Positions 19,981 through 35,311 of a stretch of DNA of 64,000 nt are shown in pieces; positions within the stretch are counted from its first letter, which is position 1; each line of letters starts with the position of its first letter. The stretch comes from Basidiobolus meristosporus CBS 931.73. Its lineage: Eukaryota > Fungi > Basidiobolomycota. The notes beneath the pieces were generated by a model. It ran no database searches, was not told where the DNA came from, and worked only from the letters and a program-made list of their open reading frames with translations. The DNA lies in contig MCFE01000010.1 in assembly GCA_002104905.1 (NCBI GenBank), positions 124,001 to 188,000 on the forward strand, read 5' to 3'. Position numbers and translations under genes: made by a program.

Positions 19981-22569
19981 ATGAACGGTGGTATCCCTGA
20001 AAGACCTAGACCAAGAAGAAGAAGTTCCACTGTACTTCCTCTCCCTGTACTTACTCCAAAGTACGAGGACCATAGAAAGAAGTTTACTGAGGAAGAGCGC
20101 AAGCTTTGGAACGAATTGATCGAAAAAAACGAGGATGACATTACGGCCATTCAAACTGCCATTGCTCGTCATATGGCTACCACCTTGGCTAGAACTCCAT
20201 ATAATGTGGACGACTTTGCCGGTTATCTTGCAACTGCATACAGTGTTCGTGATAGATTGATCAAGCGCTGGAATGAAACTCAAGAGTACCATACCGCACA
20301 TGACCCAAAAAGAGTGTACTACCTCTCCATGGAGTTCTTGATTGGCCGTTCATTAGACAATGCTTTGTTGGCCCTTGGTCTTAAGGACAACTACAAAGAA
20401 GGTGTTAAACAGCTCGGATTCACCATGGAGGATCTTATTGACGAAGAGAAGGACGCCGCCTTGGGTAACGGAGGTCTTGGTCGTCTTGCTGCTTGCTACA
20501 TGGATTCTTTGGCTACTCTTGATTACCCTGCCTGGGGTTATGGTATTCGTTACAACTATGGTATGTTCCAACAGAAGATTGTTGACGGATTTCAGACCGA
20601 GGTGCCAGATTACTGGCTCAATTTCGGAAATCCTTGGGAGCTTCCTCGCCTTGATATTTCGGTAGATGTCCGCTTCTATGGCTACGTAGACAAGAACTAC
20701 GATGGTGCCGGTAGGGCCAAGTACACCTGGGATGGTGGTCAAATTGTTCAGGCAGTTGCCTACGATGTCCCCATCCCCGGTTATGATACCAAGAATTGCA
20801 TCAATATTCGTCTCTGGAGCAGTAAGCCCACTAAGAGCTTTGACCTCGAGAGTTTCAATGAGGGTGATTACGATAAGTCGGTTGGAGAGCAGAAGTCTGC
20901 TGAGAACATCACATCTGTTCTATACCCTAACGACAACCATATGGTCGGGAAGGAGCTCCGTCTCAAACAAGAATACTTCTTCGTCTGTGCCACTCTTCAT
21001 GATATCATCCGTCGTTTCAAGAAGACCAAGCGCCCTTGGAGAGAATTCCCTGAGCAGGTTGCTATCCAGCTCAATGATACTCACCCCACCCTCGGTATCC
21101 CAGAACTACAGCGTCTTCTTATTGATGAGGAGGGTCTTGAATGGGATGCTGCATGGGATATTGTTAGTCGTACTTACGCTTTTACAAATCATACCATTCT
21201 TCCCGAAGCTATGGAGAAATGGTCAGTACCAATGCTTGAGCACGTACTGCCTAGACATATGATGATCATCTACGATATCAATTTATTCTTCCTTCAATCG
21301 GTTGAAAAGAGCTACCCTGGAGATCGTGATCTTCTGAACCGTATCTCCATTATCGAGGAGTCTAGCCCCCAAAACGTTCGAATGGCTCATCTGGCCATTG
21401 TTGGTTCCCACCGGGTTAACGGTGTCGCTGCTCTGCACTCTGACTTGATTCAAAAGACCATTTTCAAAGACTTCGTCGAGTACTATGGACAAAGCAAATT
21501 CGAAAACAAGACCAACGGTGTCACCCCTAGAAGATGGCTTCATCAATGTAACCCAGGCCTTAGTGACCTTATTACCAAGAAACTTGGCGATGACAAATGG
21601 GCCACCCATCTTACCGAGCTCGCCAAACTTAAGCAGTTCGCTGATGATAAGGAATTCCAAAAGGAATGGATGGCAGTCAAGAAGAGTAACAAAGAACGCC
21701 TAGCCAAACATATTGAAGAGCGTTGTGGCGTCAAGGTCAACCCTGAAGCCATGTTTGATGTTCAAGTTAAACGTATTCATGAATACAAACGTCAATACAT
21801 GAACATCCTGAGCGTCATTTATCGCTACTCCTCATTGAAAGCCATGAGCAAGACCGAGAGGGAAAAGCAGGTCCCTAGAGTGGTTATCTTCGGTGGTAAG
21901 GCTGCACCCGGCTACTATGTTGCCAAATTGGTCATCAAGCTTATCAACAGCGTGGCTGATGTGGTGAATGCGGACAAAGAGATTGGTGATTTGCTCAAGG
22001 TTGTATTCATCCCTGATTACAACGTGTCTATCGCCGAGGTTATCATTCCTGCAAGTGATATTTCTCAACATATCTCAACCGCAGGTACTGAGGCATCAGG
22101 TACCTCCAATATGAAGTTCGTTCTGAACGGTGGTATTATTTTGGGCACCGTTGATGGTGCCAACGTCGAAATCAATGAGGAGATCGGTGACGACAACATC
22201 TTCACTTTTGGTGTGCTTACTCATGAGGTTGATGACTATAGACATGCCATGAGATATCGCAACCTACCTATGGATCCTCAACTCCAGAAGGTTCTTGATG
22301 TTATTTATTCTGGCGTCTTCGGCGATCCAAACGTCTTCGCACCTCTGCTATACACTCTTCAAAACGGAGGAGATGTCTACCTTGTCTCGGTAGACTTCCC
22401 AAGATACCTCAAGGCACAGGCGCAGGTTGATGAAGCCTACAAGAACAGAGAGGCATGGGCCAAAAAATCAATTATGTGCACTGCCGGAATGGCCAAGTTC
22501 TCCTCAGATCGCGCCATCAAGGAGTACGCCGAATCCATCTGGAACATCAAACCCTGCCGTCTTCCTTAG
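19981..22569 (+). CDS. GPH1: Glycogen phosphorylase (intronless)
   Basis: [46 protein letters not shown] and [13 protein letters not shown]-lysine motif. Confidence 0.98.
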
Positions 22570-24967: not shown

Positions 24968-26104
24968 TTATGGTTTATCTAACCCAAGTTTGGCATACTG
25001 GTCAACAAATTCATCGAACAGCTTATTCAGTCCTAGAAGATTCAGGGGATCCTTGTCATCTTTATCGTGCATAAAACACAGCATGTTGTGGACATCAAAG
25101 GTGATGGCCAGCATGTATCCGTACTCTGACTCGAGGAATACTTGGTCCCCAGTATCAGAATCCCCCGTCAGTTTGTTCCACTGTTGGGCATATTCTTCGC
25201 AAAAGTGTCTTTTCTCTTGCTCAGTGTATTTTCTGCAATTGGCTATCTTGTTCTCCTCATCGAACCATTTAAACATCTTCTGCATAAAGTGTCCTCCAAT
25301 ATCGAGGGCTCGATAATTTCGCATCACAAATTCGAAGTCGATCAGGGCGACTTTGCTTTCACCTTCCTTTGGATCATTTTTGACCAAGATGTTCATGAAT
25401 TGGATGTCATGTATACACCAGCCTGTTTTGGCGCCAAGGGATTCAAGCTTGTCGATAACTGCTCTTAATCTCGATCCGAATTCGTAGTCAACGAGCTTGT
25501 CCACATTGACACCCCCTTCAGTGCCAAGTGCTTTTAGCTTATCCGCCTTATGATACTTCTGAAGCCCCTTGATAATAGCATCATAGTATGGTTCAACTGG
25601 CCGCTTCTCCAGTGGCGCCTTCATGGCGTGAAACGTTGCCAAGGCTCTAGCAACATCTGCTCGGATGACGGCGTTCTCAACGTCCTCTGGCTCCATGTTA
25701 CGTGCCTCCAGAAACTCATCGATTCTACCAAATGACCCATCCAGTGTCACGAAGAAGCCGTATACTTTTGCTCCAAGTCCAGATTGGCCATACTCATAGC
25801 AAAGAAGCGCCTCCTCTTGCTTACTAGGTGCCAGATTCTTGAAGATTTCGGCGTCCGCTAAGGATGTCTTATGGATTTTGATGAATAACTTCAATGGCTC
25901 AATGGGTGTGCCCATTTTTGGCTGTGGTCGCTCTACCGAACAGTGGGCGTTGACAAAAGAGTCATTGTATGACATTGTGAGGGTCTCTGGACACACCGAG
26001 GGCCACTCTTTAGTCAAAAATGTTCCGATAATGTCGCTAATCAATTGTTTAGTTGGCACCCCGTCCTCAGGAAGAGTAACGGAAACAGGTGTTAACGTCG
26101 CCAT
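24968..26104 (-). CDS. Choline/ethanolamine kinase-like protein (APH/ChoK fold), intronless
   Basis: GLGAKVYGFF, GRIDEFLEAR, Brenner-like CIHDIQFMNILV, and LIDFEF...NYRALDIGGHF choline-kinase motif. Confidence 0.85.
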   Translation of the reverse strand: MATLTPVSVTLPEDGVPTKQLISDIIGTFLTKEWPSVCPETLTMSYNDSFVNAHCSVERPQPKMGTPIEPLKLFIKIHKTSLADAEIFKNLAPSKQEEALLCYEYGQSGLGAKVYGFFVTLDGSFGRIDEFLEARNMEPEDVENAVIRADVARALATFHAMKAPLEKRPVEPYYDAIIKGLQKYHKADKLKALGTEGGVNVDKLVDYEFGSRLRAVIDKLESLGAKTGWCIHDIQFMNILVKNDPKEGESKVALIDFEFVMRNYRALDIGGHFMQKMFKWFDEENKIANCRKYTEQEKRHFCEEYAQQWNKLTGDSDTGDQVFLESEYGYMLAITFDVHNMLCFMHDKDDKDPLNLLGLNKLFDEFVDQYAKLGLDKP

Positions 26105-26975: not shown

Positions 26976-28282
26976 CTACTCCATCCATAGGGACTTTGGA
27001 CAGGGTAAAGTCGAGGTCGCATGCTTTCTCTTTTTGCCCAATCTACCTGGAATTTGAAAGACGGCAGTATAGCGATGGCCATTGGGTTTGGATAGTACCG
27101 AAGTGGTTCCATGCTCATCGACGCATGGCCTCCAGAACCATAGCACGTTATGGTTGAGCGGCACAGCCACTTTGTACTTGGGGATTATGAAGTACTGCTC
27201 TTCAGTATCTCCATCAAGGAAGCACACGCCTATAGCATATTGAGACCTGTCATTATCGACATGAAGTTTTGTGGAATAATCCTTTGTTGCGAAGAAGCTT
27301 GGGAGTGAGGTGTCCTTATGTAACACAGGTGTCTGATACTCCAATTGGATCTTGTGCCAATCCTGTTTCACATCGGGTAGAAACACATCTACAAAACTCT
27401 GGATCAAAGCTGCTAGCGTCTCAGCATCCTTCTGAATCCTGTTTATATGATCGGTGTCGGATTTCTTCACTGTCGGGATGCTGTAGAGCGAGATTCCAGA
27501 GATATTACCACCCCGTGGGCTTCGGTAGCCCACACCAAACATTTGGCCAGTAATATACTTTGATTTTCGAATCAGGTTATTACGATAGCCAGGAATGCTT
27601 CGCAATGTCTGCAAAGCAAAGTCTTCTTGGTCTCTGGAGAAGGGGTGTTGAATAACTCCGAATACAATCGCATCGTTTTGCAGCAGGAAGGTTGTTCTTT
27701 CTAAGATGGTGAAGCCTTTGGTGTCGTGCATGTGTAGTTCAACATCTTCAAACTGAGAGCAATAGGATTTATCTTCAGGAGTGACGAATCGACATTCGAA
27801 GTTGGTAAGTCCCTATGATTTATGACCAGTTTTGAATCCAGGGTAGCATAAACTGTATAGGCGTGTTCATATGACTATGTACCTTGACAATCAGCCCTTT
27901 CCTGCGGAAGTTCTTTTCTCTTATTTTGAACCTCTGATAGATGCCATATAGGGTCCTCAGTCTTTGAATATCCGGAATCTCTTGATACATAGGGCTCCTC
28001 AATCGGTTGCTCAGGTAGTTGAAGACATGGCACCTTTTGGAATCCTACAAAGCTGTTGGTGAGCAAAGAAGGCAATGGCGAAATGTTTGTGGCTGGACTA
28101 ACATCGAGAGTGACAAACTGATTTGTAAACTCAAAGAGTTGATGTTGATCAGTAAGCAAGGTGGCAAGGTGGGATGGATTGCTCTCAATCAAAGCTATTA
28201 AAGATGCAATCCAACTCCTCCAAGGTGCATAGCGATCTATCTTGGATGTACTCATAATAGGGATAAATATGGAATTAGCCAT
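26976..28282 (-). CDS. TET/JBP-family 2-oxoglutarate Fe(II) dioxygenase, 3 exons (28103-28282, 27883-28044, 26976-27812), about 392 aa
   Basis: GQMFGVGYR, HxD motif KLHVDND, FIIPKYKVAVPL...LWFW, distal His DEHGT and 2OG-binding Arg HRYT. Both introns (58 and 70 nt) are GT-AG and phase 0, giving one open frame. Confidence 0.78.
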
Positions 28283-28376
28283 TCACTCCACTTTTAAGCA
28301 AATTATTATCTCCATATTGCGCCCATTTATCATGGTCATGGTGCTATGTCTTGGAAATTGAGTGAGGATGATGTAA

Positions 28377-28925
28377 CTACACTTTCGAAAGATCTTCCGG
28401 CCAATTGATGGCCAGCAAAACAACATATTGCGCTACACTCGAAATCGCGCTACAACCACACCAGTCATATAATAGCAAGTGGAGCGACCACCGCCTCACG
28501 CTTGCTAAAGATAGGGAATGTGATGGCTCGTCTTCAATACCATAATATGGCACACGATCACAAAGATCATGGTTAAATCTCACTGCGGTATAGACTAGTC
28601 TGACTACTCGGCTATGGATATGCAACTTGGGTATTTGGAAGCTTCTCGCCCGCTTCCTTTGTTACCTTCAACGCATCAAAATCAAATATTGTTGAAGACA
28701 TATATGGGCATTATCTGAGAATATTACATCAGGCCATGATTCATTACCACCTGCACGCACACACATCATATGGAAGTCTGTGCAGATGAGTCGCTGGCGT
28801 GTGCGCTCGAAATCCATCCATGCAACGTGATTGGCACAATTGCAGTATAGTTGGTAAATTGATAACTTACTGTACGCCAATAGACACCGCCCCAACCGTT
28901 TCCCAAATATTGTAAAGCAGAGCAT
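28377..28925 (-). mobile_element. Degenerate Tc1/mariner (IS630-Tc1) transposase relic
   Basis: Across frameshifts: GFRAHTPA (cf. GFRARRPA), SWPDVIFSDNAHI (cf. W..VIFSDE), IEDEPSH (cf. QDNAPCH) and INWP. No terminal inverted repeats found. Confidence 0.5.
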
Positions 28926-29523
28926 TGAGGAGCCTGAAACTAATACATCAATGAATCAAGGATTAAGGTTGGGAACCATCAGTGAGAGGTAGCAGCGCTT
29001 CTGTTGCGTCAGCTAGCCATTCAAACCCGTGATCTTTGTTCCTAATACAGCAGCAAGGAGTTTCGAATTTCTATCCCTCATTCCTCTGCTATCGCCCATC
29101 AAAGCATCTTTCACTGTCAGAAGACTAGATCCGACACCAAGGGCCTCCGAAGTTTGCAACCCAGGCCTAATGAGTATCCAAGAAGTGAGCACAGTTTCGG
29201 GAGCACGAACAGCTGTGTCACAACTGTGTGCATAGGAGATCCGCAGGTGTATTACAGTCACACGGATCTAAATAGATACTAGCCGCCGGTCAACCTGGTA
29301 CTCTCGAAGCACAGTGCGATTTCCGATTGCATTAACCATGCTAGGTACGCTGACTGAATTCCAACACCTTCGTATCATACGAGTCCTCGTACCTGAGATT
29401 TATGCAAGTGCGCGATGCGCCACTTTTTCCTCAGTGTAAATTCACCTCTATACTCAACCTTTGCCTGCATCATGGTAATCAATAAATACATAGCAATCTC
29501 ATAAACGACCATGAGTTGCAAAC

Positions 29524-29706
29524 ATGTTGTCGATGCGTACCAGTATACTCTATGGCTTTTTGCTGCTTTCCGTGGTCCATATCAAGGCAGCCCCGATTAA
29601 CCATGCTAAATGTGTAAGCTTCGGGGGTGGTTGTAATAATCATGAAGATTGTTGCTCCACCACTCTATGTGTAGTTGATCAAATTGGATTTAAATCCTGT
29701 CTTTAA
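29524..29706 (+). CDS. Small secreted cystine-knot (ICK/knottin-type) peptide
   Basis: Signal-like hydrophobic N-terminus, then C-x6-C-x5-CC-x4-C-x9-C (CVSFGGGCNNHEDCCSTTLCVVDQIGFKSC). Confidence 0.7.
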   Translation: MLSMRTSILYGFLLLSVVHIKAAPINHAKCVSFGGGCNNHEDCCSTTLCVVDQIGFKSCL

Positions 29707-30416
29707 AGTCGCTCAAATCATCGGCGAGCATATATTCCTATATGTATGACCTGTAACCATGCATTTCCCTATTTCTTAGTATGTGCAGTAGGATTGCGAA
29801 TAAACTTGCACGAATGAAATGGGCAACCGTAACAACTCGGATGGTATGCTAGCTAAGAGCATGCTACAGACCCTGGAGTCAAAAACCCTTCTGGTATACC
29901 ATTCGCTTTTGCTTAGAGGATTGGTCAAAGTGGGTGTATGAGATTTGGTGCCATTTATATCGCCTTGAATATTACTCGGGCATTTCATTCATTCTGTACT
30001 TCCATAGGATAGGTAAAATGTTAGAAAACTAATTCATGTTCAGAAAAATCACCTAGAAAATTAAAAATGGCGGCACCAAACCATGTAACCAATTATGCAA
30101 TAGGATATTTGGCTTAAGTTATGTAATCTGAAATTCAATTCATGTTGAATGTATTTAGTCCAAGCTATCACTCTCTGGAGTATTTACTACTGTCAATACT
30201 TTTGAAAGATTTACAGTTACATCTAAATACTCCATTAACTTAGTTACATGGATCTTAGTATACGTATCTTTGATTATTTTGCTCAAATTCATTATTGGGA
30301 TTTGTAATTATTTACCAAGATCTAAAGCATTCAGTGAATCATCAAGTGAGAACCACATAATCTACTTGCTCCCCCAGTTGCTAAATATGACCAGCATTCT
30401 GTCCTGACCAAATTTC

Positions 30417-30692
30417 TAGTTGGGACTTACTTAGAATACTGTCACTAACTTATCAGGTATCCAGAACATGAAAATTCTCAACGTAAATTATGACTTTTCT
30501 CAAAGTTGTCCAAAAAACCCCAAACTTTGCGCACATATTCTTGGGACCTTCCTTAACAAACTCTACACGTTTTTTTGCTCTTCTTTATCACAAGTATAAA
30601 TACCATACTTTTGATCAATAAATCAAAAAGTGAATAACACGTAAATCCTCAAGTTCTCCATATCACTTCCAATACTCCTCAGGATGTTGCAA
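30417..30692 (+). repeat. Degenerate LTR-like repeat copy
   Basis: Aligns by eye to 31892-32130 (ttagaata...cagaacatgaaaatt...gttgtccaaa...ccaaactttgc...agtataaatac...caataaatc...tcacttccaata). Confidence 0.7.
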
Positions 30693-31622
30693 CTAGAAGT
30701 AACTATGGGCCTTTAACTCCATCTGCCTAAATGACAAAGCCAACATGCCAATTAAGTGCACAAGTGTCAAATCAGTAAGGTATGCTTGAAAGGCACTGAA
30801 AGATATCTATCAGTCATGTTCAGCTGCCAAGATAATGCACCTAGAGCACAAACACCTTACTGTCAGCATTTTATTAGGGGAAACATGTGATACTTAATTA
30901 GCAAGATTGCCTTGTTAGTTAATTACATGCAATCAGCTGGCATACAAGCCACTAATAAATGCTATAGCCATTGTAAATTTTGTAATACACCAGAATATGC
31001 ACTTATCTTAGTCACTCAATTCATGGTATAATGATCTTATAGTATTTTGCCCAAATTCCTTGTTGGGATTTATCTGGAATTTTTCACCAAACCATCAGTT
31101 GCCCCCCATATAAGAATTCTCAAGATTGTACAAAGAGCCTCAGATATTTCACACTTGCTCTTGTGACCTTCTCAAACAGATCACATATGCTTATCTGGTC
31201 AATATAGTATGACAATATAGATACTACATTTATGCTTAATAAATTAATTATGCAACAATCATAAATACCTGATTAGTGAGCTTCTCTAAATATTAGAAGT
31301 GATCAGGAGAATAAGAATTGCACTGTAATTTCAAACTCTTGATTTCTGTTTGTTGCCATATGGAGTCCTGGAGTCACCAAAGAGGTACTACATCTACAGT
31401 ATCAATGATAGGTCAGATAGACCAAGTCCAGATCTATTGGCTGCTTAATTAGAAACTGAAGCATGGCATGATATATAGAATACACTGTGGTTGGTTAGGG
31501 ACACAATTCAGCAGACAGATGACTCACTATAGGTACTTACCACCAGTTACTAAAGTAGTAATCTTATGGAGCTCAAGAAAGTAACCTACTGTAGCTCTTT
31601 TTGTTGTAACAAATTTGGAATT

Positions 31623-32876
31623 TTAGCACACTTGGCCAATATGCTACAATTGATCTAGATGGTTCTATTGCTGTACTTGTTATATATAACAACACTCCTA
31701 CTCAACTGATATTCATAGCAACTAAGCCTAATTGGAATACAAGATATTCGAATTTGTCTCTAGCTAATGATATTGTGAATATATATTCAATCATTTTTGT
31801 TGTAAAAATTTGGAATTCCACCTAAATATTTACTTAACTTAGTCACTTAGATCATTACCTTCAGATCCTAGAGAATACTGACCAAATTCCTTGTTGGGAT
31901 ATACTTAGAATATTTACCCAGAACATGAAAATTAGATAAGTTGTCCAAACAGCCCCAAACTTTGCACACATGTTCTTGGAACCTTCCTTAGCCTATTCTA
32001 CGTGTTTGTTATGCCAAGACCATGTAAAAGTATAAATACTACTTTTACACTCAATAAATCATTAAGTGAAAACCATATAATCTACTTGTCCTCCCAAATC
32101 ACTTCCAATATCTCCAAGACTCTTACAACACTTTTCACTACTAAAGCAGAGTAAATGTCAGTCTGTGAGACTACAAAGGAAGTATTATGGCTACAAAAGC
32201 TTCTTTAAAACTTGGGCCTATATTGAAGCTCCCCTACCTGAGCATATCATAAAGCTCAGGATATATTCAATTAGGTACAAATCAGATATTTCATACCTGA
32301 GCAAAGCATAAAGATATTGGATGCTGTTTCATTTAGGAAGTGATTGAGGATAATGTAGTTAACTTAGCTTACTGCCCTACTGATAAGATTGTTGAATAAG
32401 TTTTGGAGATATTGAAAGTGATTAGAAGAACAGGTAGATTATGTGGCTTTCACTTAATGATTTATTGAATATAAAAGGAGTATTTATACTTGTACATGGT
32501 CTTGGCATAATAAGCACATATAATATGTCTATGAAGGTCCCAAGAACATGCATGCAAGGTTTGAGGCTGTTTGGACAGCTTATCAAAATTCCATGTTTTG
32601 GGTACCTGATGTTTTAGTAAAAATATTCTAAGATTTGTAAGTAATGATCTAAGTGACTAAATTAGGTGAATATTTAGGTGCAATTATGAATTTCTACAAC
32701 AAAAATGATTGGACATATATTCACAATACCATTAGCTAGAGACAAATTTGAATATCTTGTATTACAATTAGGCCTAGTTGCTATAAATATCAGTTGAGTA
32801 GGAGTGTTGTTATATATAACAAGTACAGCAATAGCACCATCTAGATCAATTGTAACATATTGGCCAAGTGTGCTAA
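31623..32876. repeat. Long imperfect inverted repeat, arms about 31623-32130 and 32390-32876, spacer about 260 bp
   Basis: The reverse complement of 32390-32876 matches 31623-32130 along its length (e.g. ttagcacacttggccaatatg, gctgtacttgttatatataacaacactcctactcaactgatat, gtcacttagatcattac). Confidence 0.9.
31892..32130 (+). mobile_element. Solo LTR-like element (about 240 bp)
   Basis: Starts TGTTG and ends CAACA; TATA box (tataaata 32031) followed by AATAAA (32053); related copies at 30417 and 32390. Confidence 0.65.
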
Positions 32877-33378
32877 CATGATATATGAATGTTGAGGGGA
32901 AATAAAAACCATTTATATCGCAGTAGTAGCTGTGGTAAGGCCATAGTTTATTTCACATGCTTGGTAGAAACAGAGCACGATAGTCACCATTGAATACTTG
33001 AAAGGAGCTCTTGATTACTAGTTAAATCCTGCAAGTAGTATTGTATACCATATTCCAGCATACTAGTTCTCATCCAGCTGGGTGGCAAAATCATGGCTAT
33101 GATATGTTAGCTTAGCATCGAATCACGAGCATTATAATTGTCCAAAAAATTCAAATGTTCGAACTTGTGCTGGAATTTGGACCTATTTAGCAATATTGAT
33201 GTGGGGTTTTCATTCACATCAAGGTGTAAACGTCGGTTGATTCGTGCAAGGCTAAATCCCTTTTGAAGTGTAAAGATCGGCTGACAGCATCCTTTAGAAA
33301 ATATACTTTATTTTGGTGTCCAACTATTATTAATCGTACATCTGCTGTTAGTTTTCTCACCGTATGATCACATTGTTG

Positions 33379-35311
33379 CTAATCTTTCTTTGAATCCGCC
33401 AAAACGCCGATAATACTTTCAGGAGAGTACTTCTCTACAACATCAGGTTTGTGCAACATGTTGAACTCCTCGGATGCATCTCTGCCAGCAAACAGAAGAA
33501 TAGCTTTAGCGCCACCAGGGTGATCAGGCAGAAACTTGGTGACATCGAGCACCTGTCCATTTACAATCACCCAACAATCCTCCTTGGTGTTATGTTTGGC
33601 CACCTCCTCCAATTTATAGATTTTTTCCTTAGCCTCTGGCTGCTTACTGGCCGGAGTGGAAGGAGCTTGACTTGAGGACTGTTGGTTAGTGGGGAACTGG
33701 AAAGATCCGCCACCGTTGGATGAACTCTGTCCTTGACCATTCCACATAATGTCGAGCTGCAAGCGATTCTGTTCCGGGACGAGATTGATGGCTATCTGAG
33801 TTCCCAGATGGCCAGCAATATTGACCAAACGTCTGTTTGCAAGCTCACTGTTATTTCCTTGCTGTGGGTTTTGGCTTAGATATTTGGCAGCGCTGTTTCC
33901 AGCAACCCGTCCAAATACCACACAACCCAGAAGTGAACTGCCACCAAGTCGGTTGGCGCCATGTACACCGCCTGCTAGTTCACCGCAAGCAAACAGGCCC
34001 GGGATCTTGCCTTGGGGTCCTTTGATGCACGACTCTGGGTCAATTTCAACTCCACCCATGGTGTAGTGAAGCACGGGAGTCATCAATGCAACATGGAACT
34101 CCTCATTCATGTTGATGGGTACGTTATGGAAAAACTTCTTACCCCAGGGGTCATTCTTGTTTTTCGCGAAGCCATTATAATCGCTCAAGGTTTTGGCAAG
34201 AGTGTCGGGGGAGCAACCAATCTCCTTAGCCAACTCCTGGCCATTCTTGAATTTTTTCATCAGACCACGACCAACGTAATGCTTGCAGTGCCACTCGATT
34301 TCCTTCGAAGCCGCTTCGTTGAGCACCAGTCGAATGGGGAACTTAGATTTCCACATCTCACCAGTGACATAATCGCGGTGCCCTAGCTCGTCGCAGAAAC
34401 GCTTGCCTTCTGCGTTGATCAGAATCCCACCAACGCCGCGAAGGGCCTCAGCGGCTAAGAACTTCACCTTGGCGTCGGGTTCCTTAGGGTCAACCAGTCC
34501 GGTAGGATGTACTTGGATCTTCTCCAGATCGACCGTATTGCCACCGATAGCCATCACCATTTTGTGGCCATCACCGGTGGAGTACTCCCCATTGGTGGTT
34601 GGGAGGTCAATGAATTCTGGGCGATACTTCTTGATCAAGGAGTTCTGAGTGAAGTCGGCGGCATAACCACCAGTGGCGAGCACCACTGGTCCATATTCTG
34701 TTTGCTTCTCCCCAGCCCTGTTTTGATACTCCACTCCGATCACGGCACCCTTATCATCTTTGAGGAGGCCAGTAACCTGTGCCTTGGTGATGCACTGAAC
34801 ACGATGTGGTTCTACGCGTGAGAGCTCTTCAAGCTTTTCCATCAATGCGTAAGTGATGGTCATTCCTGGGAAACGCTCCTTACCACGATGTGTGCGTGGG
34901 AATGAGTGCCCACCAAGCCGAGCAACCAAGGAGAGGTCGAGGTCAAATCGAGTTTGTAGCCATTCAACAGCAGATGCGCTGTTTCCAGTTAGAACTTTGA
35001 CAAGCTCTGGACGGATCAAGTCCCTGGCTGACTTGGCGGTATCGTCGTAGAACGCTTGTACACTGTCCTGTAATTTCAAGGGGTTCAGTTGAGAATCGCC
35101 TAAGTGGCATGTTCAACGTGCTTACCTTGATTCCTAGTTCTTTCTGTGTCTTCGTAAGTGCACCATTGATACCAGAGGTGGCTTTGGTAGAGTTTCCACC
35201 GAAAAACGAACTCTTATCGATAACTAATACGTTGCCTCCGGCTTCGTAGACGGTGTGTGCAGCAGAGAGACCTGATAGACCTCCTCCGACGACAATGACT
35301 TTGTTTTGCAT
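33379..35311 (-). CDS. OSM1: FAD-dependent fumarate reductase (Osm1/flavocytochrome c type) with C-terminal cytochrome b5 domain, 2 exons (intron 35068-35125)
   Basis: VIVVGGGLSGL FAD motif, GGNSTKATSGIN, LGGHS, QVHPTG, HYTMGG, HGANRLGGSSL; cytochrome b5 motifs HNTKEDCW and HPGG. Confidence 0.93.

Follow-up and report, generated by a model that had tools for sequence, protein, structure and literature searches.

The gene and its structure

The window, by which we mean the whole 64-kb stretch of Basidiobolus meristosporus DNA that was analysed, carries on its minus strand a three-exon gene (28255..26976) whose exons lie in three different reading frames. The gene is real and intact, and it encodes an Fe(II)/2-oxoglutarate (2OG)-type dioxygenase of the TET/JBP superfamily, a family of iron-dependent enzymes that oxidise modified DNA bases. 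Public annotation already has the gene: the deposited record is K493DRAFT_295613, its UniRef name is "Tet-like 2OG-Fe(II) oxygenase domain-containing protein", and the deposited protein ORY07220.1 is 100% identical to exon 3. It is otherwise an ordinary family member flagged by automatic annotation, and in the literature searched we found no paper naming Basidiobolus together with TET/JBP. The features on which our argument draws are as follows.

30000..32900, strand not assigned: AT-rich, degenerate, CpG-depleted local repeats with an inverted pair (31620-32140 / 32378-32879); context, not gene
28256..29216, minus strand: non-coding upstream region shared with a paralogue (about 70-78% identity)
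28280..28282, minus strand: upstream in-frame ATG, taken as the start codon in the preliminary description
28103..28255, minus strand: exon 1, 51 aa, with the conserved ATG at 28255; first half of the N-terminal helical domain
28045..28102, minus strand: intron 1, 58 nt, GTTAGT...TTTGTAG
27883..28044, minus strand: exon 2, 54 aa; second half of the N-terminal helical domain
27813..27882, minus strand: intron 2, 70 nt, GTACAT...CATAG, phase 0
26976..27812, minus strand: exon 3, 278 aa plus stop (coding to 26979); linker and entire TET/JBP-type double-stranded beta-helix domain
27255..27263, minus strand: HVD, the HxD of the predicted iron-binding triad; exon-3 residues 184-186, residues 289-291 of the 383-aa model
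27105..27113, minus strand: HGT, with the predicted second iron-binding His; exon-3 residue 234, residue 339 of the model
27066..27074, minus strand: RYT (in HRYT), Arg codon at 27074-27072; exon-3 Arg247, Arg352 of the model
27024..27035, minus strand: KKRK basic patch near the C-terminus, read from the translation

The preliminary description had proposed a three-exon model of about 392 aa. Its three exons in three frames stand, but its start codon, first intron and length do not survive alignment with the paralogue and with the orthologue from B. ranarum. Both of these sequences support a corrected model of 28255-28103, 28044-27883 and 27812-26979, with a predicted product of 383 aa, and it is this model that protein expression would need. 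The start and the 153-nt length of exon 1 are identical in the paralogue (L001/L002) and in B. ranarum (L004 410-562). The upstream ATG at 28282 is probably not the start codon, as it is missing in both and the alignment collapses upstream of 28255. The GT and AG of intron 1 fall at equal aligned positions in all three sequences; in B. ranarum this intron is 63 nt long and contains two in-frame stops, and divergence between the paralogues is 33% within it versus 12% in the exon that follows. The first intron of the preliminary description, which we reconstruct as having its donor at 28033 and its acceptor just before 27978, was rejected because the paralogue has GC in place of the donor GT and a conserved GT/AG pair is available at 28102/28045. 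It is this conserved intron (28102-28045), together with exon 2 at 28044-27883, that gives 383 aa and not about 392.

The frame of exon 2 required an outside reference. Neither candidate frame is closed in either B. meristosporus paralogue, and a codon-position test against the paralogue (20 substitutions) revealed no third-position bias, so the frame was settled by B. ranarum, where the exon has the same 162 nt and the modelled frame alone is open, the other two containing several stops. Joined, exons 1 and 2 encode 105 N-terminal aa, over which the paralogue (P0003) and B. ranarum (P0017) align without gaps at 48% identity. Intron 2 has conserved borders in the paralogue and in B. ranarum, its length in the latter being 56 nt, and the acceptor modelled here is used by all deposited models. 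All three deposited B. meristosporus models are partly wrong; the two-exon model P0001, in which ...HLSE is joined to GLTNF, was rejected since its frame has several stops in B. ranarum.

Duplication and selection

Among the deposited proteins of this genome, three belong to the family, and they fall on two loci, one of which is represented by two contigs that are 98-99% identical. Homology to the paralogue covers window positions 29216-26998, a 2.2-kb unit limited to the gene and about 0.9 kb of upstream non-coding DNA. We considered whether this upstream stretch might be coding and rejected the idea, because every frame is interrupted by stops in the paralogue and the region therefore holds no conserved ORF; it probably represents 5' UTR and promoter sequence that was copied with the gene in a segmental duplication. 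The dN/dS values against the paralogue are 0.31 for exon 1, 0.34 for exon 2 and 0.12 for exon 3, and the exon 3 substitutions are distributed 24/22/85 over the three codon positions. These values show the gene to be under purifying selection, and it probably duplicated once inside the B. meristosporus lineage.

The catalytic core

Exon 3 matches Pfam family PF20515 (34.4 bits, E 2.9e-8, gathering score 27), as do 12 of 20 relatives; PF12851 (Tet_JBP) is matched by 2 of the 20. The HVD...HGT...HRYT set named in the preliminary description is present in full, all of it in the last exon, and its columns are nearly invariant among the 20 relatives: the His and the Asp of HVD each occur in 90% or more of them, HGT is nearly invariant, and the Arg of RYT is found in 17 of the 19 that cover that column. 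HVD and HGT are also present in both paralogue copies and in B. ranarum. In the alignment with CMD1 of Chlamydomonas reinhardtii, HVD falls without gaps on H345/D347 and HGT on the HGT of that enzyme.

Structural comparison, for which the exons were analysed separately, points the same way. For the AlphaFold model bearing on the exon 3 core (pLDDT 77.8), the best 25 Foldseek matches were to CcTet, TET2, CMD1 and NgTET1, starting from E 2e-11, and all sixteen structures at the top of the ranking are DNA-base-modifying TET-family enzymes, roughly 2-5 Z units above generic 2OG oxygenases. A best match to a 2OG oxygenase that does not act on nucleic acids, which the preliminary description had named as an outcome that would refute it, was not seen; the best matches are nucleic-acid TET enzymes, and the original assignment to a TET/JBP-type dioxygenase is borne out by the fold, by a PF20515 score above threshold and by the full motif set. 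Searched against solved structures, the profile of the clade found CMD1 alone (E 1.6e-7); a direct phmmer search of the PDB gave no match. The characterised TETs are only 12-15% identical to the Basidiobolus protein. This low figure, measured against TETs that act on DNA, is what could be said for a 2OG oxygenase of TET-like fold whose target is RNA, protein or a small molecule. We consider such an enzyme very improbable given the structure ranking, the fact that the Pfam and profile matches are specific to Tet-like families, and a C-terminal basic patch of a type typical of nuclear proteins.

Our working model of the reaction is as follows. The C-terminal 240 or so residues form a TET-type double-stranded beta-helix, in which His289, Asp291 and His339 would hold the iron and Arg352 would be placed to hold the distal carboxylate of 2OG. 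Arg352 is likely the ligand of the 2OG C5 carboxylate, its position after the second His suggesting that it is the equivalent of TET2 R1896 and NgTET1 R289, which bind that carboxylate (PMC7854593). By analogy with TET2, NgTET1 and CcTet, a methylated base would be flipped from duplex DNA into the pocket and its methyl group hydroxylated.

Known enzymes and relatives

There is precedent in the fungi for an enzyme of this kind. CcTet of Coprinopsis cinerea (PDB 7VPN, 7W5P, 8JKK), the characterised member of the fungal Tet-like 2OG-Fe(II) oxygenases, is the best Foldseek match (E 2e-11) and shares with the Basidiobolus protein the PF20515 family, the HxD...H...R set and a single-domain make-up without the Cys-rich and CXXC parts of metazoan enzymes. 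Identity between the two is, however, only 12-14%, and the Basidiobolus gene adds a lineage-specific N-terminal helical domain. The catalytic domain of human TET2 (PDB 4NM6) and Naegleria NgTET1 (PDB 4LT5) have in common with it the iron triad and the Arg for 2OG, but the Basidiobolus protein is without a Cys-rich domain and without a large low-complexity insert, and the similarity is too low for a direct phmmer match.

CMD1 (PDB 7CY4-7CY8) is the nearest solved protein by profile, and the alignment with it is gapless through HxD and HGT. This likeness raises the question of whether the Basidiobolus enzyme might, as CMD1 does, use ascorbate instead of 2OG and transfer a glyceryl group to 5-methylcytosine (5mC). 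CMD1 is unable to bind 2OG because Trp358 fills the site of the Arg that would take the C5 carboxylate and its own Arg410 points away (PMC7854593). In the Basidiobolus protein the position of the blocking Trp is occupied by Cys and the Arg after the second His (that of RYT) is kept, as it is across the clade; we therefore expect use of 2OG and regard a CMD1-like reaction as extremely improbable.

A HMMER search of 1.84 billion representative sequences returned 21 matches, the query included, at identities of at most 33%. Outside Basidiobolus these come from the Spizellomycetales chytrids Geranomyces variabilis (KAJ3183836.1) and Powellomyces hirtus, from Planoprotostelium fungivorum (PRP78645.1) and from metagenomes; we found no others, and a word search with the profile added Powellomyces alone. 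These relatives share the pattern H-x-D-x-D-R-S...HGT...RYT but lack the Basidiobolus N-terminal domain, and Geranomyces and one metagenome relative have HVA where Basidiobolus has HxD. In a tree of the clade, Basidiobolus forms its own long-stemmed group without a supported sister.

Genomic context

The gene is flanked by a choline kinase gene on one side and a fumarate-reductase/cytochrome b5 gene on the other, and every large gene nearby for which Pfam gave a convincing match is a housekeeping gene. About 1.7 kb upstream begins the block of repeats at 30000-32900, in line with an early remark that strongly CpG-depleted repeats lie within about 2 kb. The block has a GC content of 0.34 and a CpG observed/expected ratio of 0.10 overall (8 CpG in 2.9 kb; 0.03-0.21 per kb), compared with about 0.75 elsewhere, and its ORFs match no protein family. 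The footprint of CpG decay adjoins both paralogues, with CpG-depleted, AT-rich blocks 1.5-3.5 kb away from each.

The preliminary description had read the gene as associated with or domesticated from a transposable element, possibly one other than KDZ, and had reported a Tc1-like relic in its flank. In fungi, transposon-borne TET/JBP genes are found as cargo of KDZ, Plavaka, hAT, Harbinger, EnSpm and Helitron elements and fall into PU, AG and PE types. No sequence of the PU, AG or PE type is among the 21 HMMER matches, which argues for distance from those types. In its strongest form the transposon reading would have the gene carried by a DNA transposon (Tc1-like or another non-KDZ element) or recently domesticated from one, with the product serving as an anti-silencing enzyme that demethylates the element. 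It draws on the fact that in rusts, mushrooms and Pezizomycetes many lineages of DNA transposons carry TET/JBP genes (PMC12730594), on the nearness of CpG-depleted blocks to both paralogues and on a 53-nt repeat fragment that occurs both in the repeat block of the window and in the 3' flank of the paralogue. Several observations nevertheless make us consider it improbable: (i) scanned with Pfam, 28 flanking ORFs (43-165 aa) from the window and from beside the paralogue showed no transposase family, and with this the Tc1-like relic was rejected; (ii) the 2.2-kb unit shared with the paralogue has no terminal inverted repeats (TIR) or target-site duplication (TSD) at its ends, so that the gene is not found within a bounded element with a transposase of its own; (iii) the deposited proteins of this family fall on only two loci, each beside ordinary genes, and show no lineage-specific expansion to many copies; (iv) the named relatives in two chytrids are likewise single genes embedded among housekeeping genes and (v) purifying selection is strong and the exon structure is conserved across two species. 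An 11-nt inverted match does occur near the ends of the shared unit, but it falls beyond the homologous stretch, and the paralogue does not have it. The two loci without transposon linkage also set B. meristosporus apart from Laccaria and Coprinopsis, where TET/JBP gene numbers are reported to be extremely high (PMC12730594).

We favor the possibility that the locus is a chromosomal host gene for a 383-aa Fe(II)/2OG-dependent TET/JBP dioxygenase, presumed to act on 5mC and not carried by a transposon, and we hold this account as a whole to be reasonably probable. To our knowledge, the characterised TET/JBP enzymes of fungi come from Dikarya, and most of them there are carried by transposons. 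In a zoopagomycete, a TET-like gene that is conserved and not part of a transposon would be a candidate for an enzyme with which an early-diverging fungus itself erases or edits its DNA methylation.

Substrate

With regard to the base that is acted upon, we consider 5mC most likely. Our reasoning for this is that repeats in this genome bear the mutational footprint of CpG methylation, which favors 5mC as the substrate and indicates that it is, or was, available. The active site complicates the matter. The cytosine N4 of 5mC is read by N1387 in TET2, D234 in NgTET1 and D350 in CMD1 (PMC7854593). When the profile is aligned with CMD1, which takes no gap in this part, the position five residues past the first His holds Arg preceded by Asp, here and in most of the clade; in the model these are Arg294 and Asp293 (exon-3 R189 and D188). 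The Basidiobolus protein differs from all three enzymes in having this Arg in place of Asn1387, Asp234 or Asp350. Because Arg replaces the N4-reading Asn/Asp, cytosine recognition is not simply transferable. CcTet also departs from the N4-reader rule, so the Arg bears on the substrate and not on membership in the superfamily.

An alternative that would accommodate the Arg, and the DRS motif of which it is part in most of the clade, is a TET/JBP dioxygenase with another substrate: N6-methyladenine (6mA), thymine (in a JBP-like reaction giving 5hmU) or an undescribed base. Precedent comes from CcTet, which acts on 6mA in duplex DNA (PDB 7w5p; PMC12730594), and another substrate is made plausible by the richness in 6mA that PMC8298701 reports for early-diverging fungi, with B. 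meristosporus in its list of species. However, Gly331 and Asp337, the 6mA determinants of CcTet, are unmatched at the same offsets, where Basidiobolus has Arg and Gly; the neighbouring Asp, four positions after the first His, could take over recognition of N4; and the genome carries the footprint of CpG methylation. We regard a substrate other than 5mC as unlikely. A fuller version of this alternative, to which we assign a somewhat smaller chance, is that the gene represents a host-encoded Basidiobolus lineage of TET/JBP enzymes, marked by the private N-terminal helical domain and the Arg at the N4 position, whose substrate or product is non-canonical (erasure of 6mA, hydroxylation of thymine or a new hypermodified base). 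Were this true, Basidiobolus would provide the first eraser or writer of this kind from beyond Dikarya, working at the boundary of CpG methylation that is confined to repeats.

The N-terminal domain and the basic patch

Returning to 5mC oxidation by a host enzyme as the preferred reading, the remaining parts of the protein may bear on how it reaches its target. The fold of the N-terminus was taken from residues 1-200 of paralogue P0003, whose deposited model has the correct join of exons 1 and 2. Its first 100 or so residues fold confidently as a helical domain with five helices, most of residues 11-90 having block-mean pLDDT values of 72-94. The domain had been described as unrecognised, and this agrees with our searches: Pfam gave no match to it, sequence searches found no relatives outside Basidiobolus, and the closest folds in the ESM Atlas reached a TM score of 0.33 or lower, with no feature match. 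MAFFT misalignments hinted at an internal repeat between the N-terminus and the core, which was rejected (BLASTP E 4.4). We suggest that this Basidiobolus-specific domain, attached to the core by a disordered linker, probably serves in targeting or partner binding. Together with the Arg at the cytosine-N4-reading position, it is a concrete feature that can be tested. The KKRK patch near the C-terminus is a possible nuclear localisation signal, as far as its composition indicates, and would probably send the protein to the nucleus; the patch is kept in the paralogue, and B. ranarum has KKR.

A host-encoded TET/JBP-family gene and its structure

In Basidiobolus meristosporus CBS 931.73 the minus-strand locus at 28255-26976 is a genuine, host-genome encoded gene under selection, and it belongs to a sparse and very divergent clade of the TET/JBP family. 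It is an uncharacterised addition to that family, already in public databases as Tet-like; exon 3 is 100% identical to ORY07220.1 (K493DRAFT_295613), labelled 'hypothetical protein' by NCBI and 'Tet-like 2OG-Fe(II) oxygenase domain-containing protein' by UniRef. What it offers is a corrected gene model and, from an early-diverging fungal lineage, a candidate eraser of DNA methylation that can be tested.

The preliminary description stated that the ORF track splits the gene across three frames, as the mechanical ORF list does. Its model, as reconstructed (28282-28034, 27978-27883, 27812-26979; 83+32+278 = 393 aa), conflicts with the deposited models, and these conflict with one another: P0001, the deposited protein of this locus, has two exons, and the deposited paralogue proteins P0002 and P0003 differ in their middle part. 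We settled the model by comparing the gene with its paralogue, found on two contigs (L001 and L002) that are 98-99% identical, and with the B. ranarum orthologue, which is divided between the overlapping contigs L004 and L003. The start at 28255 is common to all of these relatives; the paralogue and B. ranarum lack the ATG at 28282, which was rejected as a start. The remaining features are as follows.

28102-28045, minus strand: intron 1, GT...AG, conserved in three sequences
28044-27883, minus strand: exon 2, from the comparative alignment
27882-27813, minus strand: intron 2, from the comparative alignment

Intron 1 has the donors GTTAGT, GTTGGT and GTAAAT across the three sequences, and the acceptor TTTGTAG in all three. 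Exons 1 (153 nt) and 2 (162 nt) are of identical length in both species, and the two paralogues diverge by 33% in intron 1 but by only 12% in exon 2. In B. ranarum two in-frame stops interrupt intron 1 and neither alternative frame of exon 2 is open, so that only the corrected model works there; the joined N-terminal 105 aa of P0003 and of the B. ranarum protein P0017 align without gaps at 48% identity. Given the conserved start, introns and exon lengths, the predicted protein is one of 383 aa (51+54+278). In the alignment of relatives the three exons, the three frames and the exon-2 frame of the earlier model held, while its start codon and intron-1 borders did not; its first-intron donor (reconstructed at 28033) was rejected, as the paralogue has GC there.

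Exon 2 (window 28046-27883; L001 10212-10373) has two overlapping frames fully open in both B. meristosporus paralogues, with third-position bias in neither these nor the remaining frame, and a single open frame in B. ranarum; the double open frames misled the deposited gene models. The 39 aa absent from P0003 are an annotation artefact, since the DNA of L002 is intact.

Family, relatives and fold

Exon 3 scores 34.4 bits against PF20515 (Tet-like 2OG-Fe(II) oxygenase), for which the gathering score is 27. When 1.84 billion representatives were searched exhaustively with HMMER, only 21 proteins, one of them the query, reached E <= 0.001, and the best match outside Basidiobolus had 33% identity (E 9e-15). 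The named relatives come from the Spizellomycetales chytrids Geranomyces and Powellomyces and from the amoebozoan Planoprotostelium; the remainder are short metagenome contigs. PF20515 is detected in 12 of 20 aligned relatives and PF12851 (Tet_JBP) in two of the 20. The HxD...H...R catalytic set proposed earlier is borne out: conservation among relatives is at least 90% at exon-3 positions H184, D186 and H234-G-T, and the RYT Arg is conserved across the clade (17 of 19 relatives). Two relatives, P0008 (Geranomyces variabilis; L005 8001-9038) and P0015 (metagenome), have HVA, followed directly by Asp, in place of HxD; their iron-binding carboxylate is missing or shifted, resembling inactive or halogenase-type 2OG enzymes.

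Structure matches (first value in Z units; second value as reported with the match)
TET2: 18.5; 245
CMD1: 17.6; 242
NgTET1: 16.2; 217
CcTet: 15.5; 207
FTO, PHD2, AlkB: <=13.7

TET2, CMD1, NgTET1 and CcTet all rank above FTO, PHD2 and AlkB, so the top match is not a non-nucleic-acid oxygenase, the result that the preliminary description had named as counting against its reading. Against solved sequences the clade profile matched CMD1 alone (E 1.6e-7); the alignment has no gaps across HxD and HGT.

The N-terminal 105 aa (exons 1 and 2) had no Pfam match, in keeping with the unrecognised domain described earlier. Relatives of this part were confined to Basidiobolus, both for exon 1 in the exhaustive HMMER search and in a word search that used residues 1-105 of the paralogue protein with the correct exon join. 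Exon-3 residues 11-31, disordered in the predicted model, resemble a linker. Close to its C-terminus the protein has a KKRK patch that is shared with the paralogue, is present as KKR in B. ranarum and may be a nuclear localisation signal.

Co-substrate and base specificity

CMD1 is unable to use 2OG: Trp358 takes the place of the C5-carboxylate-binding Arg, and its Arg410 points away (PMC7854593). By contrast, the profile alignment places Cys at the Trp358 position here. Together with the conserved RYT Arg, this leads us to expect a normal 2OG-dependent enzyme.

In TET2, NgTET1 and CMD1, recognition of the 5mC N4 falls to the residue five positions beyond the first His (TET2 N1387, NgTET1 D234, CMD1 D350; PMC7854593). 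This protein and most of the clade instead have Arg there, with Asp just before (clade consensus H-x-D-x-D-R-S), and the special CcTet residues Gly331 and Asp337 (PMC12730594) are without a match by offset. Base specificity is therefore not readable from homology. We would rank 5mC first as candidate substrate because repeats in the genome show CpG decay.

Selection and duplication

Between exon 3 and its paralogue, substitutions number 24, 22 and 85 at the first, second and third codon positions, and dN/dS is 0.31, 0.34 and 0.12 for exons 1, 2 and 3. In the comparison with B. ranarum, dN is about 0.35-0.44 and dS has reached saturation. The B. meristosporus copies share 80-85% amino acid identity and are closer to each other than either is to B. 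ranarum, placing the duplication later than the species split.

The paralogue contigs L001 (MCFE01000311.1) and L002 (MCFE01000871.1) carry an identical neighbour set at 98-99% identity, and over about 1290 nt of the gene the two show 14 differences. The pair represents either haplotigs or a segmental duplication of very recent date. No twin contig was seen for the window locus.

Genomic context

The preliminary description associated the gene with transposons and placed it beside a Tc1-like relic. We did not find this relic: 28 flanking ORFs gave no match to any transposase family. The large neighbours with a convincing Pfam match are listed here.

19981-22569: glycogen phosphorylase
24968-26104: choline/ethanolamine kinase, 870 bp downstream of the TET-like gene
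33379-35079: fumarate-reductase/cytochrome b5 protein
Further large neighbours: BRE4-like protein; UPF1

Homology between the window and the paralogue is confined to 29216-26998, that is, the gene and about 0.9 kb upstream, and no TIR or TSD was found at the ends of this unit. The shared upstream part is non-coding, because the paralogue has stops in every frame across it. The paralogue's neighbours are likewise ordinary (an aminotransferase, an aconitase-like gene and a probable carnitine acyltransferase exon), and the chytrid homologues are surrounded by dense housekeeping genes. In a 2025 survey covering TET/JBP genes carried by transposons, the only groups listed are Pucciniomycetes, Agaricomycetes and Pezizomycetes, with Basidiobolus absent (PMC12730594), and our literature search found no paper joining Basidiobolus to TET/JBP. 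Transposon linkage of the gene is not supported.

A 60-aa ORF at 29524-29706 (plus strand), between the TET-like gene and the repeat block, has a signal-peptide-like start and six Cys spaced C-C-CC-C-C. It may encode a small secreted cysteine-knot peptide; its match to the knottin family Toxin_12 is weak and below threshold (E 0.01).

CpG-depleted repeats

The CpG-depleted repeats described earlier are real: 30000-32900 has a GC content of 0.34 and only 8 CpG (o/e 0.10), and is built from degenerate local copies, two of which form an inverted pair of 520 bp. Upstream of the paralogue, at 2-3 kb, lies a comparable block (o/e 0.07) that is not homologous to this one. We attach little weight to the closeness of the repeats to the gene. 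The inverted arms (31620-32140 and 32378-32879; spacer 240 bp) are 82% identical over their whole length and up to 90% locally, and may represent a foldback or MITE-like element or head-to-head insertions. Older direct copies lie at 30235-30680 and 30975-31095, and all of these copies are nearly without CpG. A second strongly depleted stretch (CpG o/e 0.07) occupies 1-1000, at the window start. Within the repeat block upstream of the gene, 30775-30827 matches 11820-11872 of L002, in the 3' flank of the paralogue, over 53 nt at 83%, and may belong, as a fragment, to a dispersed repeat family.
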